A stretch of DNA of 32,122 nt from Macrostomum lignano (lineage: Eukaryota): the NCBI GenBank assembly GCA_002269645.1, contig NIVC01003386.1, forward strand, positions 1-32,122, given 5' to 3'. The notes beneath the pieces were generated by a model. It was not told where the DNA came from. It saw only the letters and a program-made list of their open reading frames with translations, and did no database searches. Numbering within the stretch: position 1 is the stretch's first letter; every line of letters starts with the position of its first letter. Positions 3,553 to 32,122 of this stretch are shown here, in pieces. Made by a program: the position numbers and the translations under genes.

Positions 3553-4825
3553 TGACAGGCATCAGTGTAGTGAGTCAGCATGACAGGCATCAGTGTAGTG
3601 AGTCAGCATGACAGGCATCAGTGTAGTGAGTCAGCATGACAGGCATCAGTGTAGTGAGTCAGCATGGCACTCATCAGTGTGAGTGAGTGAGTCAGCATGG
3701 CAAGCATCAGTGTGAGTGAGTGAGTCAGCATGGCAATCATCAGTGTGTGTGAGTCAGCATGGCAAGCATCAGTGTGAGTGAGTGAGTCAGCATGGCACTC
3801 ATCAGTGTGAGTGAGTGAGTCAGCATGGCAATCATCAGTGTGTGAGTGAGTCAGCATGGCAGGCATCAGTGTGAGTGAGTGAGTCAGCATGGCAGGCATC
3901 AGTGTGAGTGAGTGAGTCAGCATGGCACTCATCAGTGTGAGTGAGTGAGTCAGCATGGCAATCATCAGTGTGAGTGAGTGAGTCAGCATGGCACTCATCA
4001 GTGTGAGTGAGTCAGCATGGCAAGCATCAGTGTGAGTGAGTGAGTCAGCATGGCAAGCATCAGTGTGAGTGAGTGAGTCAGCATGGCAAGCATCAGTGTG
4101 AGTGAGTGAGTCAGCATGGCACTCATCAGTGTGAGTGAGTGAGTCAGCATGGCAATCATCAGTGTGAGTGAGTGAGTCAGCATGGCAATCATCAGTGTGA
4201 GTGAGTGAGTGAGTCAGCATGACAATCATCAGTGTGAGTGAGTCAGCATGGCAATCATCAGTGTGAGTGAGTGAGTCAGCATGGCAATCATCAGTGTAAG
4301 TGAGTCAGCATGGCAAGCATCAGTGTGAGTGAGTGAGTCAGCATGGCAAGCATCAGTGTGAGTGAGTGAGTCAGCATGGCAAGCATCAGTGTGAGTGAGT
4401 GAGTCAGCATGGCACTCATCAGTGTGAGTGAGTGAGTCAGCATGGCAATCATCAGTGTGAGTGAGTGAGTCAGCATGGCAATCATCAGTGTGAGTGAGTG
4501 AGTCAGCATGGCAATCATCAGTGTGAGTGAGTCAGCATGGCAATCATCAGTGTGAGTGAGTGAGTCAGCATGGCAATCATCAGTGTGAGTGAGTCAGCAT
4601 GGCAATCATCAGTGTGAGTGAGTCAGCATGGCAATCATCAGTGTGAGTGAGTGAGTCAGCATGGCAATCATCAGTGTGAGTGAGTCAGCATGGCAATCAT
4701 CAGTGTGAGTGAGTGAGTCAGCATGGCACTCATCAGTGTGAGTGAGTCAGCATGGCAATCATCAGTGTGAGTGAGTGAGTCAGCATGGCACTCATCAGTG
4801 TGAGTGAGTCAGCATGGCAATCATT
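3553..4825. repeat. 28-33-bp minisatellite, about 40 copies, filling MO25 intron 4
   Basis: Unit ATCAGTG(TGAG)nTCAGCATGGCAATC with a variable number of TGAG tetramers. Confidence 0.95.
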
Positions 4826-7130: not shown

Positions 7131-7871
7131 CTATTCAGCTATTGACATGCCCTCCTCCCCCAGGCGGGCCGGCAGGTACTCAGACGCCAGGTAATCGGCG
7201 CCCATCTCGTACAGGGCTTCGATCTCGCACTTCCAGCCCAGCCGGCGCAGCTCGGCGGCCTCGCCAGCCAGTCCGGGCACCCGGCCGGCCAGGGAGTCGA
7301 GTCGGCGACAATCGGCCGACGTCAGCGGCAGCCGGTGCGCCGCCGGCGGCATCAGGCGGCCGAGATCCAGCGGGCGCAGGCCGAGGAGCCGCATGCCGGG
7401 CAGCGGGGCAGCCAGGTAGCAGGCGAAGATCTCCAGGCCGTAGGGATCGGCGTCCATCAGGGCGAAGACCGGTACGGCGTGGCCAAGCAGGCTGCTCAGC
7501 CTGGCGAGGAACTCCCGCGCCGCCAGCTCCGGGAAGCCGCGCGAGGTCAGCAGGAGCGGCGTGCCGAATCGCTGCGACAGGGCGGTCCGACGCTCCACGA
7601 GGTGCTGGAAGACGGCGTCCTTCTCCACCACCAGGATATAGTCGGCGTCGCAATGAACCTCCGCGATGCGCCGGAGGTCGCCTGGCAGCAGTTTGGGCTC
7701 GGCGGAGCAGTCAATAAGGGCGCCTCCGCCGGTGGATGCGGACGCCTCCGAGTGCAGGCAGATGCGGCAGTTGCCGAAGAGGGAGGTCTTGGAGGCGGCG
7801 ATCACGTTCAGATCCCAGCGCGGCCTGTCCAGCTCCTGGCACAGGCGGTCGAGACGGTTGTCGAGGGCTCG
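7131..7871 (-). CDS. SPO11: Meiotic topoisomerase VI A-like protein SPO11, exon 2
   Basis: Minus-strand acceptor CGTTAG|CGA, phase 0. Reads RALDNRLDRLCQELDRPRWDLNVIAASK..., Toprim motifs ILVVEKDAVFQHL and LMDADPYGLEI, C-terminal KCEIEAL, stop TAG at 7133-7131. Confidence 0.93.
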   Translation of the reverse strand, partial: RALDNRLDRLCQELDRPRWDLNVIAASKTSLFGNCRICLHSEASASTGGGALIDCSAEPKLLPGDLRRIAEVHCDADYILVVEKDAVFQHLVERRTALSQRFGTPLLLTSRGFPELAAREFLARLSSLLGHAVPVFALMDADPYGLEIFACYLAAPLPGMRLLGLRPLDLGRLMPPAAHRLPLTSADCRRLDSLAGRVPGLAGEAAELRRLGWKCEIEALYEMGADYLASEYLPARLGEEGMSIAE

Positions 7872-7982
7872 CTAACGCGGGTATTGAGGGAGGGCCAGAT
7901 GAGATTCAACCATAGGGACTTAATAATAATGATTTTTGTCTGAGGGATAGCGGTTCTCTAAAGGCTATTAGGGCCTCTGAAG

Positions 7983-8794
7983 GGTGTCGGGTGGATTTCT
8001 GAGTGGTGTCGGGTGGGTTTCTGAGTGGTGTCGGGTGGGTTTCTGAGTGGTGTCGGGTGGGTTTCTGAGTGGTGTCGGGTGGATTTCTGAGTGGTGTCGG
8101 GTGGGTTTCTGAGTGGTGTCGGGTGGGTTTCTGAGTGGTGTCGGGTGGGTTTCTGAGTGTGTCGGGTGGGTTTCTGAGTTGTGTCGGGTGGGTTTCTGAG
8201 TTGTGTCGGGTGGGTTTCTGACTGTTGTCGGGTGGGTTTCTGAGTTGTGTCGGGTGGGTTTCTGAGTGTTGTCGGGTGGGTTTCTGAGTGGTGTCGGGTG
8301 GGTTTCTGAGTGGTGTCGGGTGGGTTTCTGAGTGTTGTCGGGTGGGTTTCTGAGTGTGTCGGGTGGGTTTCTGAGTGGTGTCGGGTGGGTTTCTGAGTGG
8401 TGTCGGGTGGGTTTCTGAGTGTTGTCGGGTGGGTTTCTGAGTTGTGTCGGGTGGGTTTCTGAGTGTTGTCGGGTGGGTTTCTGAGTGGTGTCAGGTGGGT
8501 TTCTGAGGAGTGTCGGTGGGTTTCTGAGTTGTGTCGAGTGGGTTTCTGAGGAGTGTCGGTGGGTTTCTGAGTGGTGTCGAGTGGGTTTCTGAGGAGTGTC
8601 GGGTGGGTTTCTGAGTGGTGTCGGGTGGGTTTCTGAGTGTTGTCGGGTGGGTTTCTGAGTGGTGTCGGCCTGTCGGGTGGGTTTCTGAGTGTTGTCGGGT
8701 GGGTTTCTGAGTGGTGTCGGGTGGGTTTCTGAGGAGTGTCGGTGGGTTTCTCAGGAGTGCTGGTGGGTTTCTGAGTGGTGTCGGTTGGGTTTCT
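7983..8794. repeat. About 22-bp minisatellite, about 37 copies, in the SPO11 intron
   Basis: Unit GGTGTCGGGTGGGTTTCTGAGT with 21-23-bp variants. Confidence 0.95.
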
Positions 8795-8983
8795 GTTTAA
8801 GGATCTCTGAACGACGTTAGCAGGTTCTGAATCAGGTCGGATGAGTCAGAGAGTCTCTTGACAGTAAAAGTGCACTCTCTGCCGGTCTCTGGTCGTACAA
8901 AGGTGGAGCTTCACAATCTTTCAAAGTTCAAACTGCAACTTTTAATACTGCCTAATGCAAAACAAAAGATACCAGTGACCAAC

Positions 8984-9394: not shown

Positions 9395-9722
9395 ACAACT
9401 CCGGGCGTCACTCCACAACTGGTTCAAGATCAGGGCGTCACTCCACAACTGGTTCAAGATCAGGGCGTCACTCCACAACTGGTTCAAGATCAGGGCGTCA
9501 CTCCACAACTGGTTCAAGATCAGGGCGTCACTCCACAACTGGTTCAAGATCAGGGCGTCACTCCACAACTGGTTCAAGATCAGGGCGTCACTCCACAACT
9601 GGTTCAAGATCAGGGCGTCACTCCACAACTGGTTCAAGATCAGGGCGTCACTCCACAACTGGTTCAAGATCAGGGCGTCACTCCACAACTGGTTCAAGAT
9701 CAGGGCGTCACTCCACAACTCA
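9395..9722. repeat. 30-bp near-perfect minisatellite, about 10.5 copies, upstream of SPO11
   Basis: Unit CAGGGCGTCACTCCACAACTGGTTCAAGAT; internal copies are identical. Confidence 0.95.
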
Positions 9723-11356
9723 AGATCAAGATCATATACATATTACCCGTATCCAAGTGTCTAACAGGGCGTCACTTTACCCCTATCCAAGTGTCTAACA
9801 GGGCGTCACTCACTTTTCTATTATATTGAAATTTTATTGTGCTTATTAAAGCTTAGAGGGCATTACTCAGTTAAAAGTTCATTAATTTTTTTGCTATTAT
9901 TTAAATGTTTTTAAAAAGGCCAAGTAATATGTGCCTTACTGATTAAAGTTTAATATTTAATTTAAGTAAACCATATGCAAGTTTATTCAATTTAATATTG
10001 TATGTATTAAATTTTATATTGCCAACTGTTATTAACAACAATGTTATATTTGATTTAAAATACTTATAGCATTAAATTCTATGATCAACAAAAATTAGTG
10101 CAACAAAATTCTTAGTAGTTTTATTGATACTTACTATGTTAAGAATCAAGAGTAAAACAAGATTTAATATATTTGAATAGAACTGGTGGGGAAACTGTTT
10201 TTGTATTTCTAATTTTAAAAAGCCTTTAATCAAATTTATAGAAGTCGAAAAATATGCCTAAATATTAATTAATTATTTTTTCACTCAAAATGTTTTATTA
10301 ATTTTGACAATTTATTGCCAACAAAGTTCATTTTAATATTAAAAATGCACTTATAGATAGGGGAAGATCAGCATGAAATTAGCATTTTAAATTTTACTAG
10401 GCCTATTATGCTTAAAAGTAGCAATAAAACCTTGATTCTTAAAATCCCAAAGGTATACTTTTGGAAATTAGCATTCAAAGGGTTTTAAATTTTTGTATTT
10501 TTATGTATAGCCTACTGATTATAATATAAAAAAAATTGAATGTTTATATTAATTTTGCAGCTACCTAACCTATAAATAACTAATTATTGAAGATACATTT
10601 TAATGAAGTTGCTGAAGTTAATTAAATTTACTGAATAAAGTGACTACTCATGTATTATATTGTGCTTCTGAATTAATTTACTTATAAAATTCCCTTTAAT
10701 AAATATTCAGCTCCTTGATGCTAAACAGCAAATCTAGATTATAAAAAGCAATGTATTTTGCATGTCTTTAAAATTGTAACAAGAAATTTTTTAAAATATT
10801 CATGGAGAAAATTAGCAGCTCTGAATATCTGTTATTTTTTAATTAAATTGCACTTATTATAAATTGCCTTGATCTTGGTTTACTGAGGTCTTTATAAATA
10901 TATATTGCTGATATGTTAGATTACCCTTAGGTATAAAACTTCGCCTAGAAATATATTAGATTATATGTAAAGAATAAATCTTCAACTGTAAAAAAGTGGA
11001 AATGAAAGCCAAACCAAAAGAACGCGACGCCAGTTTAGTTTAGGATATCCAAGCCATTCCAAGGCACGTCCAAAGCAGTCACAAAATATTTAAAACATAT
11101 TAATCAAAGCTTCCATTTTCATATTTTACTTACCACGACTACACTTTTAAGAAATAAATCGAATATATTGCAAAAACAGTCTTACTCCATTCTTTTATTT
11201 TAGTTTTTAATCTAAAAATTTGTTTGTCTACGTGGTAAAAATGCGCGGTTATATAAGAAGTGATTCAACGTGCTACGTTACTTAGCATGCCCGGCGACCC
11301 TCATCTATTCGGCTTCGTAGTGCTGTCATTATTCACTTAATTTAGCGAAACACACA

Positions 11357-12008
11357 ATGAGTGAATCAATTGGAGATAGTCAGATTCAATCCGTCCCTTT
11401 TTCGGATTCTGCCGCTTTCAGTCATCCATCAGCAATGCTATCTGCGGACAGCACTAAGAATCAGCTTGCCTTCTCGGATTATCTATCTGCCTTTTCTGGC
11501 GTAGATTTTCATGGTCTAAACCTAGACCTTGACAACATCATACCATACATGCAGGCCAGTCAAAATTCACCCTCGGCAATGGCTCTAGCTGGCGCTGATC
11601 AAAATGGTCACGGACACGCTGGCATGTATGAGAACGTAAAACTCGAAGACCAAATGTACGCCGCTGGAAATGCTTCTCAGTACCAGAGCAACCGCAACAG
11701 TACGGGTGCCTATCCTGGCTCCGCTGACATGAACTACGCTTTTAACCCACTTAGTGGCAACACTCAGCAGTTCAGCCAGATGAACTGCAACTATCCGGGA
11801 ATGATTGCGCCTGCCAAGCCGGTGCAATATGGCGCGACGGATTTCGAATCGCTGCAGCAGAAGATTTCGCAGAAGAAGCAGACGCTGGACATTCTGCAGG
11901 GCGTGCTGCCGGATCCGCTGGCTAACCAGGAGAAGCGCTATATGACGATCACCGAGAGAATTCAGGTGCCCTCTTCTGATCACGTGGCCGAAATAGTTGG
12001 CAAAAATG
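11357..12008 (+). CDS. MEX3: MEX3-like KH-domain RNA-binding protein, exon 1
   Basis: Long low-complexity N-terminus, then TERIQVPSSDHVAEIVGKNG, matching MEX3 KH1 (VPSSEHVAEIVGRQG). Donor ATG|GTGAGT, phase 1. Confidence 0.85.
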
Positions 12009-12480
12009 GTGAGTGAAGTTCTTTTTCCAGTCTCTACTGCCTTATTTTTGCACCCATTTTTGCAATGAAAACAATTCCTTGAACGAGCTTTGAATCTGAT
12101 CTTTTTGAGGAGGCAGTTGGCAGTTTGAGTCTAGGCCTAATGCATTATTTAGCGATTGTCAAGTATAAATTTTCTATGTTTTCGTTGTCTAGGCTCATGA
12201 TGCAGCTACTATACATGTATAATATACAGTAAGTACAATAGAATCTTTATCGTGTTTTCTAAACTAGCAGTAATCTATACAAGGCGTGTTGCAAATTTAT
12301 TGATGATAATGAAATGAAAGCTCAATAGCTCTCGCCGACTCTAAGTAAAACCACAAGTGCCAGCTCAGCGAAATGCTCAAGTAAGCACTAGACATAGGCA
12401 GCACGCACACAGCACATACTGTGTACGCTCGTACATTATCGCAACCCTTTTTTATCCCCGCCTGTTCGTAAAACCTGCAG

Positions 12481-12590
12481 GTCAGCGGATCAAGCAGTTG
12501 CGCGAGCAGCTCAAGGTGTGGGTGAAGACGCCTTCGCGGGATGAGCCGCCCATCTTTGAGGTGACGGGCCTACCTGAGAAACTAGCAGAG
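12481..12590 (+). CDS. MEX3: MEX3-like protein, exon 2
   Basis: Acceptor CCTGCAG|GT. Reads QRIKQLREQLKVWVKTPSRDEPPIFEVTG (MEX3: [28 protein letters not shown]). Donor GAG|GTGAGT. Confidence 0.88.
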
Positions 12591-12966
12591 GTGAGTATAA
12601 AATCTTTTTAGTATGCCAAAAACTGATCGCGTTAATGTACACTTAAATTGTGTTTTAGGCCGCACTGCTAAAACGAGAGACCCCCAACATTGTTATTCTC
12701 CGTGCCCCGGTATGAAAAAAAAACATGCAGCTTCCAGTTGCGACCATTCTTACACTATTAGGAATTTGTTCACCAAATAAGATTTTGTAGACTTGATGTA
12801 TAGTTACATAAATAATAAAATATTTTACCAGTTTTGACAATCTGACTCACGTATATACCTTCCCATTTGACTGCATAACATCTCAGACTCTATGTAATGT
12901 TATTGATATGCTAAACTCTTATTCCAATGATTCACTGAACTCCACTCTCTTCACTCATAAATGCAG

Positions 12967-13874
12967 GCCAAGCGCATCATCCTGCAGATGAGCGAGCACT
13001 TCACCAAGGTGCAGCAGGAGCGACTCCACCGTGTGGAGCCCAACCGCATCGAGGATCGACTGTACGTCGAGCAGGACAAAGTGGGCCTCATCGTGGGCGC
13101 CTCCGGCCAGACCATTCGCTGGGTGCAGCAGCTGTCGGACACGCACATCGCCACGCCGCGCAAGCAGGAATCGATCCCCGGCCTACCGCCGCCTCAGACC
13201 TACTTCACCATCTGCGGCACGCCTGACAAGGTCAAGTTCGCCAAGCAGCTCATCTGCGAGTACGTGACGCTGCGCTGCCAGGGCCTCTGGCTCGACCCAG
13301 ACTTGGAGCCGTCTGCCGAGGCTTCCAAGCTGGTGCGCGACTTTCACCAACGGCGTCAGGTTGAGGACAACCAGCGCCGTACAGCGCAGGGCAGCCCGCC
13401 GGAAGCAACACGCCTGTGCTCGGCCGATCTGCCGCGGCCGCTGCCGGTCGCCCGTTGGTTGGCGCGGCTGACGGAGACCACAACCCGGCCAGCGTGAAAC
13501 AGCTGATCAGCGAGATGGACGACCTCTGGGGCTCGGCCGCCGCTCGTGCCAGCGCTCCAACCAGTTCCGCCGGCTCTTCCGGCCAGGAGTCGCCGCGTCG
13601 TTACATGCAGACTGGCGTCTGGAATCCAATGATGTACAGCGGCGGGCCCAGCTGCCTGGTCACCGGGGATCGACGCTTCTCGGCCGACGCGCAGCACGCC
13701 GGCTCGGCGGCCCCCGGCACGGTCGGTGCGGGCGCTGCCGCCAGCGCCATGACGAAGTCGCGCAGCGATGAGCAGGTGTCACCGCAGCCGCCCGTGCCGG
13801 TGCTGTCGCTGCCAGCGGCTTCCGACCCGGGCCAGGCTGGATGTGAGAATGTGGCTCCGAAACTCACCGGATGA
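12967..13874 (+). CDS. MEX3: MEX3-like protein, exon 3 (KH2 plus tail; -1 frameshift near 13365)
   Basis: Acceptor ATGCAG|GCC. Reads AKRIILQMSEHF, then KH2 VGLIVGASGQTIR...THIATP...FTICG. The original frame stops at 13497; GC3-rich coding continues in the -1 frame to TGA 13872-13874. Confidence 0.72.
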
Positions 13875-16800: not shown

Positions 16801-18309
16801 GAGAAGGATTTTCACATAGCTAGCTGCTGCCTCAGTGTGTTTCAGATGAGTCATGCTGGATGGCGCTTTGTTGACTAATGCGACCTATTCAGGAAATTCA
16901 GGAAAATGGAAAGGAAGATCAGCCAGAAATTTTTGTATGTATCCGACTGAAGCTTATTTAAGTCGGCTGCTAGGCCCCAAGCATTGACTATTGACTTCAT
17001 GCTGTATTGATTTGCTCCTCATTGTTTATTTGATATTGATTGAAAAATTCACATTTTAAGCGCTATTGCAAGGATAGTAAGGAGACTGTTACAGGCAATT
17101 CTTTCAGACTGTACGCCGTTGAGTCATCTTGCGCTCCAGGGTTGCGCTCTGAGCTCAGACTCCCCTGGGGGCAGGGAGGGTTGGTGGGTGGACCGCACGC
17201 ACGCCCCATCCTTGCTCAGCTATTATAGGACTTGGAAAAGAGAGCTCTGGGCAGGCTGTGGCAACCCCCCCCCCGGCATGCTAAGTGTGCGCGCGAGTTC
17301 AGCCCAGGCTTGAGAGGAAAGCGAGTGAGTGAGTGACTCATGCGAGGAAAAAGAAAGAGGAGTGGAGCGCTGAGCACGGGACCGACAATGCGCGTCTGGC
17401 CTTGTCTAGCATGTCACATGACTCAGCCAAGCCTCTCTAAAGCCAGTGGATATCATGGACGGTATTCCATTTGAACCCAAATATAAAATTCATGGCTAAC
17501 ACTGTGTCTAATAGTGTTTCTTTTGGACTGGCAATGCACACGCATACTTCCCTCCGCAAGTGAAGCACGTGAGAGACCTCCACCCACGTGATTGGGTCTA
17601 GTTCCAGGCGCCGTCAGTTGTATTACTGGTATTGTACCATAGACATTTGGGCCGGAATTGGGTGTGGGTCGAAGCTCCAACTTATGACCATAGACTATTC
17701 AACTATTGAATAAACCAAACTAGCCAAGATGGTCGCCGATTTGCAAAATGCTATTTGCAAAAAGGTCACGGAGCAATATAATATAAGGTATCATTTATTT
17801 GGCATTGCAACAACTGAAAGCCTAATCATTTTTTCTGGTCATTGTCAGATCACCATGGTGACTGCAAGGGAATCAACAAAAAATGTCACATTTTCGTCAC
17901 TTTTTGTTCAGATTTTACCAATGGTCCGGCGCAGACTCCATGCTGAATCTACCAATCTAAATCCAAGGACTACTTAACAACGTGTTGTCTAAATCTCCGG
18001 AATCTCCCGGTGCATTTATCCCACCATCTGTGGCGGGGGGGCTATTTAGCGATCCGATTTTATCATGCGCACGACGAACGTTGGGAATTTCCCCTCCTGC
18101 TCCTAGTGCTGGGCTGGGATCAAAGAAGGCAAGCCGCCGGCTCATAAACTTTTTACTGGACCCACTGTCCCGAAACCCGAGTGCAGTCAAGCTCAGTACT
18201 ATCCAAGAGTTATATTTTGGTTGCATCAGGGAATGTCCAGCTTGTTTTTTTAGAAATTTAAACTTTTAGGCTAGCTAGGATAGCGCCAGAACTTTTAGAT
18301 AGAGAGCGA

Positions 18310-19330
18310 CAGCAGCTGACACATGGCGACGGCATCTGACACAGGGGTTGGCAGTATCTGACATAGTTTGACAGCATCTGACACAGGGGTTGGCAGTACC
18401 TGACAGTTTGACAGCATCTGACACATGACGACAGCATCTGACACAGGGGTTGGCAGTATCTGACATAGTTTGACAGCATCTGACACATGACGACAGCATC
18501 TGACACAGGGGTTGGCAGTATCTGACATAGTTTGACAGCATCTGACACAGGGGTTGGCAGTACCTGACATAGTTTGACAGCATCTGACACATGACGACAG
18601 CATCTGACACAGGGGTTGGCAGTATCTGACATAGTTTGACAGCATCTGACACATGACGACAGCATCTGACACAGGGGTTGGCAGTATCTGACATAGCTTG
18701 ACAGCATCTGACACATGGCGACGGCATCTGACACAGGGGTTGGCAGTATCTGACATAGTTTGACAGCATCTGACACAGGGGTTGGCAGTATCTGACATAG
18801 TTTGACAGCATCTGACACATGACGACAGCATCTGACACAGGGGTTGGCAGTATCTGACATAGTTTGACAGCATCTGACACAGGGGTTGGCAGTACCTGAC
18901 ATAGTTTGACAGCATCTGACACATGACGACAGCATCTGACACAGGGGTTGGCAGTATCTGACATAGTTTGACAGCATCTGACACATGACGACAGCATCTG
19001 ACACAGGGGTTGGCAGTATCTGACATAGTTTGACAGCATCTGACACAGGGGTTGGCAGTATCTGACATAGTTTGACAGCATCTGACACAGGGGTTGGCAG
19101 TACCTGACATAGTTTGACAGCATCTGACACATGACGACAGCATCTGACACAGGGGTTGGCAGTATCTGACATAGCTTGACAGCATCTGACACAGGGGTTG
19201 GCAGTATCTGACATAGTTTGACAGCATCTGACACAGGGGTTGGCACTTGGCAGTGTCTACTTGACATAGTTTGACAGCATCTGACACAGGGGTTGGCAGT
19301 ATCTGATATAGCTTCACAGAATCTGACACA
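18310..19330. repeat. Composite satellite of 42-bp and 20-bp subunits
   Basis: A = TGACAGCATCTGACACAGGGGTTGGCAGTATCTGACATAGTT, interspersed with B = GACAGCATCTGACACATGAC. Produces Cys-rich pseudo-ORFs in all three minus frames. Confidence 0.95.
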
Positions 19331-22300
19331 GAAAGAGCCAGGATCCAATCCTGATTTTCACAATTTTGGTGAGAAACCTGTGACTGAGCTCAGCTGACTC
19401 ATTCTGAATCGCATGGATATTAGGAGTCAGGAGACACCAGCATGTCCTAATCGTGCTAGTACATACAAAAAGTTCTAGTCAGCAAAAATCGCTCCAGATG
19501 TGCTTGGTAAATTTGGTTTGTTTTCCTCTACAACGCACTGTGAGTATGCTTACGCAAAGCTCAACAATTTTGAGATAACAAGCAACTGAACTCATGCATG
19601 CCAGTCATGTAGCTGCGGTTCCATAGTTTACTGAAATTGCGAAATTCGCATTGAAAAAAATAGTCATTCCCTGACATAAATTTAATTCCACAGTCCCCAC
19701 CCGCGCACTCTGATCTCTCTTTCTCTCTCTCTCGATTCAACTCGATCCTTCGGTCAGTTGAGTGATTCGGCGAGCTCAGCTAAACCGAACGCATCGAGCC
19801 GCCATGCACACAGCCTACAGTGCTTGGTTATCTTTCGGTAGAGCGGTACGTGGTGCAGCCTGTGTATCAGTGTGTGTGTGTGTAGTACATGTGCCTGTGC
19901 GCAGCGATAGCAGCAGTGTAGCTCATTTCCGTGTCTGCGGCTCTGTTATTAAGGCAGGAACAGGCACCGAGGCAACGCATGCCATGCGGACCAGCTAATG
20001 CACAATTGCTACACTAATAATTATATTTCGCGCATGCGACAGATAGACAGACAGCAAAGCAGCAAGTCTTTGAATTGGCTGCGAAAAGTGCTAAATGTGG
20101 AAGTTCAGGCGATTTGAATGGCTGCACTTATGTATATCAGCTCGTTTACCCTTAACGCGAAACATATTTATAAATGCGCTCTTCCTTCTCCTGAGAGATT
20201 CATTCTTGGCGGCTCCACCAGTGCGTTCTGCATCGAAAAGCCATAAATAAGGCAGAGAAAATTCTGATTAATTCGAATCGAACCAACCCCAGCAGGACTG
20301 AGAGTTTTCCGCCTTATCGGTAGGGCAGTCATGCCGAACAAAGTATAGCATAGTAAAGCATATATGAATTACTAATGGAGATGTCGTGTGATGCTATTTT
20401 TAGAACGTGACGCAGCCTTCATTTTAGTCATTCGTAATCGTATAAGCAATATCAGTTCGGCCCACCCGTGTCCCTCTAGGATTTTGGCAGACGACGGATG
20501 TTACAGTTCAGTTTTCATCATGTCAATCAACCATACTAAGCGACTTCCTTTGTCCTACGAAGATCGTAAGATCATTTGATGGATGGCTGATTGATCTGCT
20601 ATGTATGAATCAGTTTCTTTCAGAATTCCTATCACTGTAATCACCATGACTTTTCTCAGGGCTTCCTGGTACGTCCGCATGGGAGATGAGCTGAGACTCG
20701 ACAGGTTGGGAATTTCATAAAACCTTCATTTCACATCGCCAAAACTTCAAATAGCCTAATTGCTTAAATTATTAGATATCAGTCCTTACTTCTGCACAAT
20801 TTGTCTCAGGGTTTGTCTCAGTGGTTTGTACATGCGATTTCATGATGTTAACGTTTTTAGGCATTTAGGCGATGTGAACTTCAGTTCCAACGAGTGCGAC
20901 AGCTGGCTGGGTCGTCTAAAGTTTCGGCGACTTGAAAATTTAGATCTTGTGATATGTGAAAGCGCCCCGACTCCGAGGTGGCTTGTAGACTTGTAGTGGC
21001 ATGGAAAAAATGGTTAGAAAGAACAGATCGTGACTCATCGGCTCTGGTCCTGCATTGGGCGCAACAGAAAATTTGAGGCAAAAAGGGGGCGAGTGCATGT
21101 AACAAAGAGTGGTAAGGTGTGGTGACAAGACTTTACAAGACTTTCAATCCCACCGCCTTTACCACCGTTCGTGTGGGCCGAGTTATATGTGAGCAAGAGA
21201 AGCAATAAAATGGCAAAATGTTGGCTTCATCACAAAAAACCCGGGGGCACAAGGAGGATGCAAAGTTCCAATAATTGGGCCCCGACGTTGCGTCAGCTGA
21301 AAATTTCTTTACGAAAGCAGCCAGATTTCTTCAACTATATAAAATGCGAGCTTCATTTCTGTAATTTCATTCCTTTACTTTCCTACAGAAAAGTAAAGCT
21401 GCAGAGACTACAGGATTGGTGGAGGTTGGAACTTGGAAGGTTGGAACTTGCCAGTTCCCCCCTCCACGACTGGCTTTCCATTAGAAGCAATTTGCAGCCT
21501 CCGCGGTGGGGAGGCTGGTCAAGGCGGGACCCGATTTTCAGACTCCGCCAGCCCAGTTTGCGCCCCCCCCCCTACGACTGCCTATGGTTTCTGTTCGAGG
21601 AAGCATTGTTGCTACACCGGCCTGCCCCACTGCCTGCACCTGTGCTGCAGCGAGCGCAATTGCTGCATGCGCAGGTTAATGGCTAACTTCAGATTTTTTA
21701 CCTTCCTTTTACTCCGCCCGAATATTGACGGTCTCTTCTTTTTTCATGTCTTCCTCAATATTCCTTAATTACTAGCGAGATCTCTTATCGAAGGGAATAA
21801 ATATCCCAGAGTATGCTGTATTAGAAGTCAGTTTACATACATATAAGTTAGGCCATTCGAGAAACGTTAAGGCCAACTGCCCAGACAGAGCCCAAGCTGT
21901 CGGGACTCCAAAGCTTTGTGCGGATTCGGACCTTCGCAAGACGTGGAGCGCAATTAGTCAGCAGTTCGGACAAAGACTCTCCCAATTTCTGTTTGTATAC
22001 CGCCCCCTGTTTTCCCATTTATAGGAAGAAAATTCTGTTAGAATTTTAGCTAGCCCCGAACTGGGACACAAGAGTCACGTGTTTGTTCAGGCGGAAGGAA
22101 CGCTGCGGAGGGTTGGGCGGGCGCCTACAGGCTTTGTTTCAAATAAGATCTCTAAGTCAAGGACAACTCGAGCTAGAAATCGGGATAGGAAGGAAGCATG
22201 GTTGGTGATGCCCCAGTTACGCGGAAGAGAAAAAACGTGTTAACAGAAAATTTTGCACATACAAAGTATATTTATCATGTGTGATAGCGTTCTTAATTTT

Positions 22301-22347
22301 TTTCCATCTCTTGTCCTCGGGCTTTCACTACTCATCATCCCAATTCC

Positions 22348-22712
22348 CTTCATCTCAGCTTCCTTCATCTCAGCTCCCTTCATCTCAGCTCCCTTCATCT
22401 CAGCTCCCTTCATCTCAGCTCCCTTCATCTCAGCTCCCTTCATCTCAGCTCCCTTCATCTCAGCTCCCTTCATCTCAGCTCCCTTCATCTCAGCTCCCTT
22501 CATCTCAGCTCCCTTCATCTCAGCTCCCTTCATCTCAGCTCCCTTCATCTCAGCTCCCTTCATCTCAGCTCCCTTCATCTCAGCTCCCTTCATCTCAGCT
22601 CCCTTCATCTCAGCTCCCTTCATCTCAGCTCCCTTCATCTCACCTCATTCATCTCACCTCCCTTCACCTCACTTCCATTTATCTCACCTCACTTCCCTTC
22701 ATCTCACCTTCC
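22348..22712. repeat. 15-bp pyrimidine-rich minisatellite, about 20 copies plus degenerate tail
   Basis: Unit TCATCTCAGCTCCCT. Confidence 0.95.
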
Positions 22713-24055: not shown

Positions 24056-25083
24056 TGGCTGAGATGGCTGAGGCTGAGCAAACAAAAATTATTTTCTATC
24101 ATTGTTATTTTCTGTTATTCTTTTACCAGCAACACCAGGAGAAGGGCACAGAATGTATAGCTGGTGGCGGCTGATGAATTTTCGGTTGGGTGGGAATGCT
24201 AATTTTAGCGAGTTCAGTTGGAAACTCAGGTATTAATAGAACGGCATAACAAGCCTTTAAAGCCAAAACGGGCGTAAAGGAAGAAGTAAAATTAGCAACA
24301 GTTTTATGACTTCTTCGCTTTGTCAGCACCAAGATTCGGAGCTGGCCGGCTTTCGATGCTTCAAACAAACGGAACTGAGGTTGGGGGTATGTATAAACAC
24401 GAATCCTAAAAGCCTCAAAAAGCCGGCCTGGCAACATGAAATTAAAGTTGGGGCGTCTGTCTCTGTCTTGGAGTCGCAACCAGCAACTTATTCATCTAAG
24501 TCGACGGGGTATTTTTAGCCAAGCACAAAATTTCCCAAAGTGTACGCTGGTATACGCAAGGATTTTAATTATATCTGATTTAAAATCCGAGTGGTTTGCG
24601 ACCCCCTCCCATGCCCTGAATTTGCATCTGGCAAATCGCCAAACTAATGGGGGGCTTGAAATCTTGTGAAATCAGAGCCGGGCCCCAGTGCAGTTTTGCA
24701 GTTGGTATTTCTCTCCTCTCCGCTTTCTGATTAAAGAAGAGTTCCTTCGTTACTCAGCCCCGCCGCCCATTCTCATTGAGGCAATTTCGATACAGTCCTG
24801 CTTGAACTCTCTAACCCCGTATTATTTAATAAGCCCGCGAGCAAACGGCCGACCCAGAAGGAGGACGCGACGCGATGCTTCCGCAGCTTTTCTGCTTTTC
24901 AAAAGATTTGCATTCCGTCTTATTTTTTACTCCCATTTTTCTCGCAGTCTTTTGAAGGCATTTCCGACTTGTTTTTTAGTAAAGGTATAAAAACCGGTTG
25001 CGTGCCTAATTATATTCAGGACACATTCTGCTTCTTCATACCCCCAATCGAACTGAAGAGTTTTCTCAAACCTTTATGCAGCG

Positions 25084-25740
25084 TTGTGAAACTTCAAGGT
25101 TGTGAAAATTTGGGGTTGTGAAACTTTGGGGTTGTGAACTTTGGGATTGTGAAACTTTGGGGTTGTGAACTTTGGGGTTGTGAAACTTTGGGATTGTGAA
25201 ACTTTGGGGTTGTGAAACTTTGGGGTTGTGAAACTTTGGGATTGTGAAACTTTGGGGTTGTGAAACTTTGGGATTGTGAAACTTTGGGATTGTGAAACTT
25301 TGGGGTTGTGAAACTTTGGGTTGTGAAACTTTGGGGTTGTGAAACTTTGGGGTTGTGAAACTTTGGGATTGTGAAACTGAGGTTGTGAAACTTTAGGGTT
25401 GTGAAACTTTGGGGTTGTGAAACTTTGGGATTGTGAAACTGAGGCTGTGAAACTTTGGGGTTGTGAAACTTTGGGATTGTGAAACTGAGGCTGTGAAACT
25501 TTGGGGTTGTGAAACTTTAGGGTTGTGAAACTTTGAGCTTGTGGAACTTTGGGTTGTGAAACTTTGGGATTGTGAAACTGAGGCTGTGAGACTTTGGGGT
25601 TGTGAAACTTTGGGATTGTGAAACTTTGGAGTTGTGAAACTTTGGGATTGTGGAACTTAGGGTTGTGAAACTTTGGGGTTGTGAAACTTTGGGGTTGTGA
25701 AACTTTGGGGTTGTGAAACTTTGGGGTTGTGAAGCTTTGG
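25084..25740. repeat. 16-bp minisatellite, about 40 copies
   Basis: Unit TTGTGAAACTTTGGG(G/A). Confidence 0.95.
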
Positions 25741-26906
25741 TTTTGTGAAGTTTATGGATTTAAAAATTTCAGGATTGTAAAATTCTGTGGTTATACTCGT
25801 ATTGTGGAGTTTATGAATTCTTTGTGAAGTTTGTGAAGCTTGGGAATAGTGAATTCAATATCTGAATATTGAGGCTGTGGAACTTGCAGGCCTATACTCA
25901 GTTCAGGTGAATTGGCAACTCGGTCATCAATCGATTATAAAAAGCAGGTGCAGGTTCCCCTCTGCAGGCAGCACAGACCCGGGGCTGCTGGGATAACCGA
26001 TGGGGACCCAAAGATAGATGGCATTTCCCTCTAATATTGGCTGTTCGGCGGGACGGCAATTATCCACGATCCTCGAACACACAGAGAAGCCCGGCCCATC
26101 TGTCGCAGGGATATTTTAATGAATTTCTTTCGGCTCATTCGGCTCCAACCCCAACCCCAGATAGGGGTGGGGGGCAGCCTTTGTTCTCCAGTTCACCCAG
26201 TTTTAATAAGCGCACTGCGATTAAAAGCCAATCACGAATTTTCCTTTAAAAATTCCGACAGCCTACTTGCAGTAGTGCTAAAAGAATTTTAGTTCGCGTT
26301 CGAATGAATAGAAAAAAACGCAATGGTTAAAAAGTACACCGTGCTATAACTTGCTGCAAAACTGCACACTTTTCTAACAGTAAAATCAATATTTTTAGCA
26401 GCCTATCTATTAAAAGCGTTCTGCTTGGAAAAGTACAAACTAAAGTAATAAAGTACACAGGCATACTTAAAATGGGCGACTTCATTTCACTACTATCTGG
26501 GCCATTGCTTATAACACTTAAGCCAATTCCATGATCGCTAACTACACGTTTGACAGCAGATTTAACAATTTTTTATGTACTTTACCGATTGCTGATGTAC
26601 TTTAAAAGCAAATTTTTGCTTTTGTGTTTTCCCAGACACTTACTTTGAGAAACGCATGCAGACTTGTAGATATGACTCACAAGGCCCTACATCGTACCAG
26701 CAAGAAATTGGCCCGTATGGCTGAGCTACGAACTAAACCCTTCTCATAGTAAGCTTTGAAAGAACGGCTAACATGGCGACTCCTAATTATCGGCCTTGGG
26801 ACCACAGTAACCCGCTAGTGCTACTCAGAGCCTAACGAACTCTGCGCACTGACAAAAACAGCAATGGCAGTCTCTCCGATCAGCACTATTCAAGCCAGTC
26901 TGTCCG

Positions 26907-27506: not shown

Positions 27507-27761
27507 GGGACGGTGCGGTGATGGGCTGGCTGTTGATGACTGATCTGTTTGAGTCCTTTCTCAGATCTGATTGCACTCGTTGGTCAGACAAACTACTGAA
27601 TCGATACTTTCTAGCGAATATAAGACCTACGCGACATATTAGGGAAATTGGAACAGCACTTTGTCTATGGGATAAAAGTAAGTTCCGCCAAATATAAAGC
27701 TGATACTATAGTCCGGGTGACGTTTGAAAAATAGTAAGCAACAACAAAGCGATATGATGGG

Positions 27762-28520
27762 GAGACAATGAAGCTGGATGACGAGACAGCGGAGCTCGAT
27801 GAGGAGACTGCGAAGCTCGGTGGGGAGACAGCGGAGCTCGATGGGGAGACAGCGGAGCTCGATGGGGAGACAGCGGAGCTCGATGGGGAGACAGCGGAGC
27901 TCTTATCGGGGGAAGGGGAGATCGGGGAGGAGACAGCGGAGCTCGATGGGGAGACAGCGGAGCTCGATTGGGAGAAAGCGGAGCTCGATGGGGAGACAGC
28001 GGAGCTCGATGGGCAGACAGCGGAGCTCGATGGGGAGACAGCGGAGCTCGATGGGGAGACAGCGGAGCTCTTATCGGGGGAAGGGGAGATCGGGGAGGAG
28101 ACAGCGGAGCTCGATGAGGAGACTGCGAAGCTCGGTGGGGAGACAGCGGAGCTCTTATCGGGGGAAGGGTGGAGCTCGATGGGGAGACAGCGGAGCTCGA
28201 TGGGGAGACAGCGGAGCTCGATGGGGAGAAAGCGGAGCTCGATGGGGAGACAGCGGAGCTCGATGGGCAGACAGCGGAGCTCGATGGGGAGACAGCGGAG
28301 CTCGATGGGGAGACAGCGGAGCTCGATGGGGAGAAAGCGGAGCTCGATGGGCAGACGGCGGAGCTCGATGGGTGAAGGGGAAATCGGTGAGGAGACAGCG
28401 GAGCTCGACAAGAAGAAGGGGAGCTCGATGGGGAGTCAGCGGAGCTCGACAAGGAGAAGGGGAGCTCGATGAGGGGACAGCGGAGCTCGGTGGGCAGACA
28501 GCGGAGCTCGATGGGGAGAC
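27762..28520. repeat. 21-bp purine-rich minisatellite with higher-order block duplications
   Basis: Unit GAGACAGCGGAGCTCGATGGG; the interruption block CTTATCGGGGGAAGGGGAGATCGGGGAG recurs. Confidence 0.93.
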
Positions 28521-28611
28521 AAAGCCAGTGTGGCAAGTAAAAATTTAACAGTGCAGGCTGCCTTTGCTGGAAGTGCTGTGATTGGCCCGCGCAAAAGAAT
28601 TGTAGCAGTGC

Positions 28612-30881
28612 ATGTCATGTCGGCGCTCCGTCTTCTCTGCCAGCTATTTGAAGCAGCAGAAGGCAGTGCAGACCCAGCCGCATCGCATTATCATGCAGCA
28701 GGCCGATCTCGCATCCCGCATGCACGCGGCCGTCCAGCTGGACGATGCTGACGCCCTTGAAAAGCTTTTGCGTAGCGGCGGCGATCCCAACGCGCCCTGC
28801 GCAGCTTGCGAGGAGGCCGGCGTCATCGGGCGCCGTTGCCGGCGCCGCCTGCTGCACGCGGCCGTGTCGCCTGAGTGCCGGCCGGCCTGTCTGCGCCTTT
28901 TACTAGCCAGCGGCGCCGACCCAGACCTCACCGACGCTGATGAAGATCGCGGCAGCAGCGGTGATAACGAAAGCTTCGAATATAATGGCGAAGATGTCGG
29001 CGAGACGCCGCTGCACACGGCAGCCGAGAGCTGCCACAGCGGCGACGCACCCTGCCTGCTCGCCCTGCTCGCCGCCGGTGCCGACTGCTGGGCGACTGAC
29101 GCCGATGGCGACAACCCGCTGCATCGCGCCTGCCTGGCCGGCAACAATTCTGCCGCGGCAGCTCTGCTGGCGGCGGAACCGCGGCTGGCTTGCTGCCCCA
29201 CCATCGGGCTCGGCCTCGGGAAAATCACTTGCCTGCACGTGGCCGCGGCCGCCGGCAACGCTGAGCTGCTGCAGCTGCTGCTGCGTTGCGGCGCCGACCA
29301 CCTGGCTCTGGACGGGCGAGGCCGGGCGCCGGTTGACATCCTGCTGGTTGGCCGCGACACCGATGGCCTGGACTGCCTTGGCCGGCGCCTGGCTGCCCCC
29401 CTGCGGCCGGGCCTGCGACGGGGCCAGACCGCCAGCGACCTGCTCTCCAGCCGACCCGGCCGCGCCTACCTGGCCCAGCTGCTGAGCATCGACACAGGCA
29501 CCGCCTTTGACGGGGAGACGCCGTTCCGGCCGAGCGACCGGGTCTGTAAGGAGCGGCTCGCCGGTCTGGAGGCGGTCGCCAGCGAGCGGGGAATGTCGAG
29601 CCAGCGGCTGGTCGACGCCTTGGTCGACGCGCATCAGCTGGGCCTGACGCCCGATCTAGAGCTGGCGGACTCGGCCGGCCTGGTTGGCCGACTGGCCGGT
29701 CGTGTCGGCCGACTCGTCCTTTTGACGCAGGAAGCTGGCCAGCTGAGGCGGCTGACCGCCTGCAGGCGTCTCTGGCTGCTGCTGGCCGCCCGGCTCCGAC
29801 TGCGCATCCGCCAGCTGTACTCGGTGGCCCTCCGCTACCGCAAGGCGACGGTCTCTGGGTCGTCCGCCGCTGCGGCTGCCTCGGCTTCTGTTGTCGGTGG
29901 GCCGTGTCAGGCGATTCGCCGGGAGCTGGCCGCCGGCTCCCCTGACGGCCGCTGGCGCGTGGAGGCCGGCCGGCTGAACCGGGCGGTGGCCCGGCTGACC
30001 GGCTTCGAGCGGTTCCGCTCCCGCGAGCCGGTGTTCCCTCGTGAGATCGACGCCGTCGGGGCGCTGCGCGATCCGCTGCAGTCGCTGACCACCTGGGCGG
30101 TGCTGACAGGTCGCCTGCGGCTGGTGACGGTGCTGCTACGCCAGGAGGAGTTCGACATGGTGCCGCTGGCGCTGCTCTCTGCCACGCTGCTCCGCGCCCT
30201 GGCTCGCCGGCCGGAGGTGGACAACGTGTTCGCCGAGGCCGCAGCCCGCGTCGCCGGCATCTGCGAGTCCTTGGCGGTGCGGACGCTGCGCGCGGTGAAA
30301 GACGTCGACAGCTCTGTGGGCAACTGCCTGACCATCAGCTTCATCAGCCAGCCACTGCCCAACTACGCCGACTACACGGTGCTTGACTTGGCCGCCATCG
30401 GCTGCGTCACCAGCCTCGTCAAGCTGGACATCGCCGAGCTGGCCACGGACATGCGCTGGTATGGCGAGTTCTTTAACAGTCGCTCCCTGCCCGGCCAGTC
30501 GTTGTTTGTTCGCGAGCTGCTCATCGCCTGCGGCTTCCTGCCGCCGCTGCTGCCCTTCCTGCCGCGCCTGCTGCGTCGGCTGAATGATCCGGAGAAGAGG
30601 CGCTTCCTGGACAAAATGCTGGGCGACTCGGATGGCGAGGGCAACGACGACGGTGTTGAAGAGGATGAGCTCGCTAACGCCGATGAGGAAGAGTCTGTCG
30701 AGAATAACTCGTCAATCGGCCGCCGCCGCCGCATCCACCCGGCTGGTGCTCAGAGCTTCGGGCCTGCGCCGCCGACCTGCACCGCTTCTACGACACTCCG
30801 TGCGTGAAGTTCCGCGCCAGCGTAGCGTTCTACTTTGCAACCGTGACCATGCTGTCGCTGATGATTTTGCACGACTTTCAG
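28612..30881 (+). CDS. Ankyrin-repeat TRP channel with TRPM-like body, exon 1 (-1 frameshift near 30740)
   Basis: About 5 ankyrin repeats (e.g. GETPLHTAA...LLAAGAD, GDNPLHRAC, TCLHVAAAAGNAELLQLLLRCGAD). TRPM MHR4-like WAVLTGR...LALLSATLLRALA and LPNYADYTVLDLA...WYG. After the shift: FYDTPCVKF plus S1. Donor CAG|GTGAGA. ATG at 28612 (alternative 28693). Confidence 0.8.
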
Positions 30882-31042
30882 GTGAGACAGTTTTACTTAT
30901 TGGCGTGATGGCAGATTGTTTGGCATGCGGCTGAGCTGACGGCAAGAAGGTGCCGAAAAGAGTTGCATTCTTCCACGTTTATTTCCTGCTAAAGCAAAGA
31001 TAAGGAGGGCTGAATAGATAAAAGGTTTTCGGCACCACGCAG

Positions 31043-31583
31043 GGTGACGTCAGCAGCCTGGAGGTGGCGAGCTACTTGGCCATGCTGGGCGTTCTGGCCG
31101 AGGAGCTTCGCGAGCTGGTCGCATGTTATCACCGGGGCGTGCTCGCCACCTACCTCTCCGACGGCTGGAACATCTTGGACTTGGTGGCTGTCACCTGCGG
31201 CTTGATCGCTTTCGTCTCTCGCCGCTTCAGCTCGAGCGATTGGGACTTGCTTGGCACCCTGATGCCGGACCACGAGCGCCGCTCCCGCAGCGTCGGATAC
31301 ATCTTCGTGGTAGCGGCCACCCTCATCTTCTGGCTGCGCATCCTGTTCGTCTCGGTCGTGCTGGAGTCTGTCGGCGTCAAGCTCAAAATGCTGTCCCAGG
31401 TCATCCGGCGCGACTTCATCCCGTTCCTGTACATCTTGGCTGTGGTCATGGCCGGCTTCGGGATCGCCTTCGCCGCTCTGCTCTGGCCGGGCGCCGCCTA
31501 CCACCGGAACGGCAGAAGTGTGAACATCCCGCCTGCCGAGCTGGCGGTGGCCATCATCAGGAGGACATTTTATGCCATTGTGG
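31043..31583 (+). CDS. TRP channel exon 2 (S2-S5 and pore helix)
   Basis: Acceptor CACGCAG|GGT, phase 0. Contains EELREL (S2), DGWNILDLVAV (S3), FWLRIL (S4) and DFIPFLYILAVVMAGFGIA...LLWP (S5). Donor GTGG|GTAAGT, phase 1. Confidence 0.88.
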
Positions 31584-31635
31584 GTAAGTAGCTGCGGACA
31601 CACTGGAGGCTAGGCAACAGGGGCTTTTGGTTAAA

Positions 31636-31920
31636 TTGGATTGGATTGGATTGGATTGGATTGGATTGGATTGGATTGGATTGGATTGGATTGGATTGGA
31701 TTAGATTGGATTGGATTGGATTGGATTGGATTGGATTGGGTTGGATTGATTGGATTGGATTGGATTGGATTAGATTGGATTGGATTAGATTGGATTGGAT
31801 TAGATTGGATTGGATTGGGTTGGATTAGATTGGATTGGATTGGGTTGGATTGATTGTATTGGGTTGGATTATATTGGGTTGGATTGGATTGGATTGGATT
31901 GGATTATATTGGGTTGGGTT
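31636..31920. repeat. (TTGGA)n pentanucleotide microsatellite in TRP intron 2
   Basis: Direct reading of tandem TTGGA with TTAGA/TTGGG variants. Confidence 0.95.
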
Positions 31921-31936
31921 ATAACTCCCCTCGCAG

Positions 31937-32122
31937 GCGAATACGGCCTGGACGAACTCGAAAACGTGTGCGACTACAGCCCCAGCGACGGCAACGACAC
32001 CTCCGCGCCGGATGGCGCTAGCATGTGCGTGGCGCACCCGGCAGCGACCTGGTGCACTACATCCTGCTAGTCCTATAACATCGCCATCGTACAGATCCTG
32101 CCTCCTGAACGTGATCGTGGCG
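31937..32122 (+). CDS. TRP channel exon 3 (pore loop and S6), partial, with apparent indels
   Basis: Acceptor CTCGCAG|GC gives GEYGLDE...C...C..HP. S6-like VHYILLV / YNIAIVQIL / LLNVIVA is recovered only across three frame changes. Runs off the window end. Confidence 0.7.

Follow-up and report, generated by a model that had tools for sequence, protein, structure and literature searches.

The window analysed here is a 32,122-nucleotide stretch of the Macrostomum lignano genome (contig NIVC01003386.1 of assembly GCA_002269645.1). Its 3' end carries, on the + strand, a gene of the TRP channel superfamily in which ankyrin repeats are joined to a channel body of the TRPM type. The gene opens with an open reading frame (ORF) of 731 amino acids (aa) at 28612-30807, with the start codon at ATG 28612 and an alternative possible at ATG 28693. 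The nearest proteins are two uncharacterised M. lignano database entries, P0001 (BOX15_Mlig030258g2, 1176 aa) and P0002 (BOX15_Mlig004154g2, 985 aa), found in a word-indexed search with E 1e-177, which are 44-46% identical to the window protein over 93-100% of its non-ankyrin part and share its layout of Ank, TRPM2-like and Ion_trans domains in Pfam. Using tblastn, aa 38-644 of P0001 align with 28720-30690 (42% identity) and aa 681-721 with the exon holding pre-S1 and S1 (63% identity). The parts of the gene are given below, each with the evidence for its placement; MHR denotes the TRPM homology regions, AF2 AlphaFold2 and pLDDT its predicted local distance difference test score.

28612..30747, + strand: first coding exon, frame 1, 712 codons, N-terminal cytosolic region (ORF list; tblastn; AF2 pLDDT 77)
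28699..29349, + strand: five ankyrin repeats and a C-terminal capping helix, aa ~30-246 (Pfam, AF2, Foldseek)
29359..29697, + strand: helical linker, aa 250-362 (hhalign, phmmer, AF2)
29698..30561, + strand: region homologous to MHR3 (C-terminal part) and MHR4, aa 363-650 (hhalign, Pfam, Foldseek)
30562..30758, + strand: acidic loop, poorly conserved, holding the frame change (three-frame translation, boundaries of the tblastn high-scoring segment pairs)
30759..30881, + strand: pre-S1 motif FYDTPCVKF and S1, frame 0, exon end CAG/GTGAGA (translation; tblastn)
30882..31042, + strand: intron 1, 161 nt, GT..AG, phase 0 (spliced translation continuous and aligning with homologs)
31043..31583, + strand: exon for S2-S5 and the pore helix (FYAIVG) (Pfam Ion_trans 6e-9, alignment with TRPM structures in the PDB, column comparison)
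31584..31936, + strand: intron 2, 353 nt, GTAAGT..CAG, phase 1 (splice sites; position and phase as in P0001)
31937..32122, + strand: exon with the selectivity-filter loop GEYGLDEL, a pore loop with two Cys, and S6 (..ILLLNVIVA) (three-frame translation; alignment with P0001 and P0002)

The switch from frame 1 to frame 0 lies somewhere in 30690-30759, as judged from three-frame translation and the ends of the tblastn segments, and the intron of P0001 between L654 and E655 maps close to this acidic loop. A (GGATT)n microsatellite at 31635-31917 takes up intron 2. The phase-1 intron between FYxIVG and EYGLDEL is common to the window gene and P0001, as is a similar contrast in G+C content (GC) between exons and background, whereas the remaining intron positions of P0001 differ. 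The exons of the window gene have a GC of 0.63-0.69 against 0.48 for a background rich in minisatellites; the corresponding value for the exons of P0001 and P0002 is 0.53-0.62, and the window protein is far richer in Ala, Arg and Gly than either. The last exon reads through S6 only after three corrections of a single nucleotide, all in or adjoining homopolymer runs:

~32035-39 (C-run 32037-39), + strand: S6 indel 1, one C missing (three-frame translation)
32077/78, + strand: S6 indel 2, an extra A (three-frame translation)
32101/02, + strand: S6 indel 3, an extra C (three-frame translation)

The corrected S6 equals that of P0001 and P0002, LVPYVLMVVYIVVVQVLLLNVIVA, residue for residue in length. 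An initial annotation of this DNA, made from its letters, had described one uninterrupted frame for the whole protein. This is true from the ankyrin repeats through the linker to MHR4, but not for pre-S1 and S1-S6, where the frame change, two introns and the S6 indels intervene.

The N-terminal region contains about five ankyrin repeats, as was initially annotated. Pfam reports Ank (2e-18) and Ank_2 (1e-16) on the 731-aa ORF, together with Ank_3, Ank_4 and Ank_5 (range 1e-11 to 2e-18), in the AF2 model of aa 1-712 the ankyrins appear as five pairs of helices with a cap, and a Foldseek search with the whole N-terminal model gave matches to DARPins with a target-normalised template-modelling score (TMt) of 0.83-0.84 and a root-mean-square deviation of 2.6-2.8 Å. 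No SLOG/LSDAT domain was matched by Pfam in the window protein, even at E<=1, and a SLOG hidden Markov model built from 73 TRPMs was negative for the window protein and for all members of the ankyrin-bearing clade described below. The linker at aa 250-362, for which AF2 gives helices, has no detectable counterpart in canonical TRPM, the reliable region in hhalign beginning only at aa 363. Its conservation is limited to the Macrostomum-type subgroup, with the P0001 linker matching only P0001-P0004 in phmmer.

From aa 363 onwards the protein is recognisably TRPM. Residues 363-650, which include the motifs WAVLTGR, ALLSATLLRALA, LPNYADYTVLDLA and RWYG, align in hhalign with residues 495-791 of the canonical TRPM P0024 (probability 99.7%, E 1.5e-25), in which the PF25508 domain spans 481-754; of MHR3 only the C-terminal part is detectable by this method. 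The PF25508 (TRPM2-like) match in Pfam is weak in the window protein (E 2e-3, aa 485-594) and stronger in the homologs. When aa 251-683 were modelled alone (AF2, pLDDT 81) the best 50 Foldseek matches in the PDB were all TRPM chains, with none from TRPC. Because nothing aligns reliably upstream of aa 363 while the rest is of TRPM type, the ankyrin repeats and the new helical linker of ~110 aa stand where TRPM has SLOG/MHR1-2 and the beginning of MHR3. The MHR4-like region that the initial annotation had placed downstream of the ankyrins is therefore borne out, being matched by TRPM only among the best hits, but its linker of ~230 aa is reduced to aa 250-362, since residues 363-480 already align with MHR3/4 of canonical TRPM. 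Likewise the suggestion that ankyrins had replaced MHR1-3 is correct for MHR1/2 but not for the C-terminal part of MHR3, which is kept with MHR4. That the join between the ankyrins and the MHR4-like region is no artefact of gene merging was also correctly seen, as no intron or stop lies between the two and the join is conserved in at least 25 homologs.

Weak ankyrin-like signals were also seen in canonical TRPMs. The first ankyrin repeat of the window protein resembles the MHR3 motif of P0024 at 494-522 in an alternative hhalign match of low probability, and a consensus ankyrin query weakly matches the region directly after SLOG in P0043 and P0051 (aa ~383-475, E ~5e-4). These signals fit the degenerate ankyrin repeats that Burroughs and colleagues are said to have described within MHR3 in 2015.

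The channel domain contains the expected pre-S1 motif and S1-S6, again as initially annotated. When the non-ankyrin part was searched against the PDB with phmmer the best 60 matches were all TRPM, with alignments spanning MHR4 to the pore; they were led by nvTRPM2 (6co7, 5e-16), followed by the choanoflagellate TRPM2 chanzyme and TRPM1/3/8/4/7/5. A profile of the transmembrane (TM) domain of the ankyrin-bearing family scored 497 in hhalign against SLOG-bearing TRPM (E 3e-71), 123 against TRPC3 (E 5e-17) and 85 against TRPV1 (E 2e-11). The channel body is thus TRPM-like, and not TRPC- or TRPV-like. Within the S1-S4 voltage-sensor-like domain (VSLD) the residues of the cation site are kept, with EELRE in S2 and WNILD in S3 supplying E, E, N and D. 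The equivalent S2/S3 residues coordinate Ca2+ in TRPM2/4/5/8. The change from Q to E in S2 is common to the Macrostomum subgroup and TRPC3. The selectivity filter reads VGEYG, near to the FGE type. A PF23317 tag was also obtained, but this is the generic YVC1_C/TRP domain, which is present in TRPV1 and TRPC3 too, and is uninformative.

Comparison with the other TRP families sets the architecture in context. With canonical TRPM, namely TRPM2 (including nvTRPM2, 6co7, and the chanzyme, 8sr7) and TRPM3/4/5/7/8, the window protein shares MHR3C/MHR4, a FYxxPxxKF pre-S1 motif, S1-S6, an E/Q/N/D-type VSLD site and an 'FGE'-like filter; it differs in having canonical ankyrin repeats in the place of SLOG/MHR1-2. 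No TRPM_tetra match was found by Pfam in full-length P0001 and P0002, the model being one that may miss divergent coiled coils, and no NUDT9H domain was detected by Pfam in full-length P0001. The order of ~4-5 ankyrins, helical domain, pre-S1 and S1-S6 is also that of TRPC, and the E/E/N/D arrangement at the S2/S3 site is as in TRPC3. However, the TM profile is a much weaker match to TRPC (123 vs 497 for TRPM), the TRP box in the homologs is WLFERY rather than the EWKFAR of TRPC, and no match to TRP_2 (PF08344) was found by Pfam in the window protein or its homologs. TRPS (soromelastatin) channels have a SLOG N-terminus, a C-terminal Nudix domain and no ankyrins (Himmel 2020). The window protein, in contrast, has ankyrins and no SLOG, and its full-length homologs have no Nudix domain. 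TRPN and TRPA carry long ankyrin arrays of about 29 and 14-17 repeats, respectively, whereas the window protein has only ~5. No TRPN or TRPA chain is found among the best 60 phmmer matches in the PDB, and NOMPC (5vkq) surfaces only in the ankyrin-dominated Foldseek search with the N-terminal model.

The initial annotation had taken this to be an undescribed TRP architecture. Real though the architecture is, and unusual by the standard of TRP textbooks, this does not hold, as ankyrin-bearing TRPM-like channels have already been published in flatworms as TRPM_MCLZ, an earlier description of ankyrin-TRPM proteins in the clade being a finding that the initial annotation itself had named as refuting its view. 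Park et al. 2023/24 in the Journal of Biological Chemistry (PMC10788528) identified Smp_333650 of Schistosoma mansoni as TRPM_MCLZ, a three-exon gene cloned from cDNA with 'multiple ankyrin-like repeats' at its N-terminus, and in HEK293 cells (S)-meclonazepam evokes Ca2+ signals and currents through it. Sprague et al. 2024 (PMC11731825) described TRPM_MCLZ as having ankyrin-repeat modules instead of MHR1/2-SLOG, and in a 2026 paper (PMC12861061) the group is named 'TRPM-like' for its N-terminal ankyrin repeat domains. Two of the proteins retrieved here, P0192 (CAH8438365.1) and P0222 (CAH8481013.1), are TRPM_MCLZ accessions used by Park et al., and the published residues are found at their stated positions in the retrieved proteins: H946, Y1038, R1120, T1121, Y940 in S. 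turkestanicum, and F952 in Echinococcus. Like TRPM_MCLZ, the window gene has N-terminal ankyrins, no SLOG/MHR1-2, a VSLD and pore of TRPM type with the S2/S3 cation-site residues conserved, and few exons. The TRP helix of the window gene lies past the end of the window; in the M. lignano homologs it is of TRPM type. The sequence is MWLFERYDLNKEF..PPPF in P0001 and HWLAGRYKMVKEY..PPPF in TRPM_MCLZ. The two differ in the filter ('FEVS' in TRPM_MCLZ, VGEYG in the window gene), in the frame disruptions of the window copy and in that the window gene falls in a separate, Macrostomum-expanded subgroup with its own linker.

Paralogs with the same layout, for which the initial annotation had proposed a search, were found in M. 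lignano and in further flatworms. An exhaustive HMMER search with a profile of the non-ankyrin part returned 655 proteins at E<=1e-3, and every top full-length match has N-terminal ankyrin repeats; the named top matches come from M. lignano, Opisthorchis, Dicrocoelium and Schistocephalus, while a search with the Dicrocoelium protein led to orthologs from Schistosoma, Trichobilharzia, Fasciola, Calicophoron, Echinococcus, Taenia and Sparganum. Further matches come from assemblies of sequencing runs, P0014 being from run DRR639838. M. lignano contributes at least nine separate clusters in a library clustered at 50% identity. The window gene belongs to a subgroup strongly expanded in Macrostomum, a large expansion that has apparently not been described before. 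No protein identical or near-identical to that of the window was found in a collection of 15 billion proteins, either by exact look-up of the 731-aa ORF or by HMMER.

Two unusual layouts were noted among the relatives. The M. lignano TRPM P0020 (PAA85706.1, 1781 aa) has 3-4 ankyrin repeats (aa ~90-212) before a complete SLOG (280-532), TRPM2-like region and channel, and together with P0179 and P0180 makes up three near-identical gene copies of equal length. It falls outside the ankyrin clade on the TM tree, and could be an intermediate architecture with both ankyrins and SLOG or a repeated merge of gene models. The Opisthorchis viverrini protein P0010 (XP_009163665.1, 1906 aa), which has cluster mates of up to 2059 aa, contains two Ion_trans stretches and is probably either a model that merges two tandem TRPM_MCLZ-like genes or the product of a genuine tandem duplication among opisthorchiids.

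A neighbour-joining tree was built from 297 trimmed columns of the region from pre-S1 to TRP, with 133 TRPM-like sequences and with TRPC3 and TRPV1 as the only outgroups, no labelled TRPS, TRPN or TRPA sequence being included; bootstraps are from 300 replicates on a subset of 84 sequences. All the ankyrin-bearing sequences form one clade on this tree, with a bootstrap of 80% when P0031, which is not labelled as having ankyrins, is included and of 22% when it is not. Within the clade the window sequence nests inside the M. lignano paralogs and groups with P0001 and P0002 (100%), the Macrostomum-type subgroup is recovered at 99% and the neodermatan TRPM_MCLZ at 100%. The TM domain of the window gene therefore groups with verified TRPM_MCLZ orthologs, as far as a distance method goes, and in phmmer the same domain matches TRPM_MCLZ (7e-28) better than any SLOG-bearing TRPM (5e-20 at best). 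The ankyrin clade as a whole lies nested among the TRPMs that have SLOG, and a further flatworm TRPM group splits off before it.

Taken together, the locus very likely holds either a gene or a copy that decayed not long ago, of which the product is a cation channel of the flatworm 'TRPM-like' kind in the TRPM_MCLZ clade. Its architecture, its homology and its membership of this clade are direct observations, and make it a new member from a free-living flatworm of an architecture already known from parasitic ones. By homology with TRPM structures and Sm.TRPM_MCLZ the product would be a tetrameric non-selective, Ca2+-permeable cation channel. The ~5 canonical ankyrin repeats and the short linker sit in the SLOG/MHR1-2 position of TRPM and are joined to the retained helical domain of MHR3 (C-terminal part) and MHR4; pre-S1, the S1-S4 voltage-sensor-like domain and S5-pore-S6, all of TRPM type, follow, and in the homologs a TRPM-type TRP helix is next. 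Gating would be expected to proceed from the S1-S4/TRP-helix cavity, which in schistosomes is the ligand pocket for meclonazepam, while protein-protein or inter-subunit contacts would presumably be the contribution of the ankyrin domain. As there is no SLOG, the N-terminal site for ADP-ribose or nucleotides of TRPM2-type channels would not be usable.

Several observations weigh against a simple assignment of a working channel of this clade to the window. Overall identity between the window protein and TRPM_MCLZ is only ~20%, and the window gene represents a paralogous subgroup of the clade rather than an ortholog. At the S4 position of His946, on which meclonazepam sensitivity depends, it has Phe, and the Echinococcus ortholog, with Phe at the equivalent position, shows low sensitivity to the drug (PMC12861061); sensitivity would therefore not be expected, and from its sequence the window channel is predicted to be insensitive. 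The distance-based tree misplaces TRPC3 inside TRPM, so that all TRPM-like sequences form one group in only 1% of bootstraps, and because this misplacement arises from long-branch effects the deep relationships on the tree are unreliable. The window stops within S6, leaving the TRP helix and C-terminus outside. Finally, four frame disruptions fall in the last ~1.4 kb, in the acidic loop and S6, with none in the first 2.1 kb. Either the window copy is therefore a pseudogene or this part of a long-read assembly is prone to error, and the copy as it reads now may not give a functional channel.

That the window copy is a pseudogene, having decayed within the expanded family of Macrostomum type, has a substantial though somewhat less than even chance. 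Three of the disruptions cluster within 70 nt at S6, an essential helix, duplication of the family is extensive in M. lignano, where many models are partial, and the absence of a near-identical protein from the 15-billion-protein collection is also consistent with decay. On the other hand, neither the first exon (2.1 kb) nor the second (540 nt) contains any interruption, both are well conserved and keep the invariant motifs, and the corrected S6 retains the length seen in the homologs. The S6 indels, moreover, are single bases at homopolymers, adjoining both a microsatellite and the end of the window, which is the signature of long-read error rather than of random decay. It is this homopolymer character and position that lead us to favour an assembly error, such as locally poor polishing beside the (GGATT)n array, by a modest degree over recent pseudogenisation in a family with many duplicates. 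The disruption at 30690-30759 could alternatively be a candidate intron. A 59-nt intron of phase 0 at 30697-30755 would lie near the position of the intron in P0001, and there are two further candidates of 101 nt, 30653-30753 or 30655-30755, but these introns would have weak splice sites in a GC-rich segment, and a 1-nt indel gives a loop length closer to that of the homologs. The frame errors and repeats at the locus might also raise the suspicion that the ankyrins and the channel come from two neighbouring genes brought together in assembly or annotation. This is hardly credible, as the ankyrins and the MHR3/4-like region share one uninterrupted ORF of 712 codons, the layout recurs in over 25 flatworm proteins from independent assemblies and in a 1072-aa ORF on an intron-free 6.8-kb contig assembled from a sequencing run, and Sm.TRPM_MCLZ was cloned from cDNA.

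A broader question is whether the ankyrins are ancestral. Two papers on TRPM evolution have TRPM and TRPS as ankyrin-free, with ankyrins lost before the TRPM-TRPS split, and did not sample Platyhelminthes (PMC7306681, PMC13143021). This leaves room for an undescribed family or architecture bridging TRPC/TRPN and TRPM, as raised in the initial annotation, which would lie outside TRPM+TRPS with ancestral ankyrins, and both the E at the 'Q' position of S2 in the Macrostomum subgroup, as in TRPC3, and the unsettled deep position of the clade on the neighbour-joining tree could be taken in the same sense. Nevertheless, we consider such a bridging family very unlikely. The architecture is already published for TRPM_MCLZ, the members of identified origin, which do not include P0012, P0014, P0025, P0031 and P0033, are all Platyhelminthes, the tree nests the clade among SLOG-bearing TRPMs and its TM profile is far nearer to TRPM than to TRPC3. 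That MHR3C/MHR4 is kept agrees with a secondary exchange of the N-terminal module in the TRPMs of flatworms. It is similarly unlikely that the ankyrin-bearing TRPM-like channels as a whole are an old, separate lineage of group-1 TRP channels that lies outside TRPM+TRPS and has kept an ancestral ankyrin N-terminus; if true, this would overturn the loss of ankyrins before the TRPM-TRPS split and add a further TRP family. The 'ankyrin-free' conclusion of the two main TRPM/TRPS papers needs a footnote, as they sampled no Platyhelminthes.

The window itself is one more copy of the gene, possibly broken. The clade to which it belongs, however, holds TRPM_MCLZ, a validated anthelmintic target, and free-living flatworms like Macrostomum are tractable laboratory models with many paralogs. 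These paralogs could be used to study the ankyrin N-terminus on a TRPM body and the natural stimuli of orphan channels.

Other coding regions are present elsewhere in the window. On the + strand a Mo25-like (CAB39) exon at 1657-2430 (PF08569, 2e-13) lies directly downstream of, and shares its open frame with, a 42-bp minisatellite of nine copies (1657-2036). A GC-rich ORF of 224 aa on the - strand at 7131-7805, with the Toprim domain of Topoisomerase VI-A/Spo11 (PF21180, 1e-26), probably represents a SPO11 exon. Several + strand ORFs at 11357-13874, with a KH_1 match (1e-10) at 12961-13494, are probably one gene for a KH-domain RNA-binding protein; at 13416-13497 a pair of these ORFs overlaps in different frames, perhaps through another indel or an intron. 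GC ranges from 0.23 (10001-11000) to 0.73 (29001-30000). Minisatellites with units of 15-166 bp are unusually dense across the window, examples being those at 3648-4824, 7976-8795, 9403-9720, 18308-19331, 22345-22695, 25083-25749 and 27756-28521, and a 21-bp array ends ~90 bp upstream of the start codon of the channel gene.

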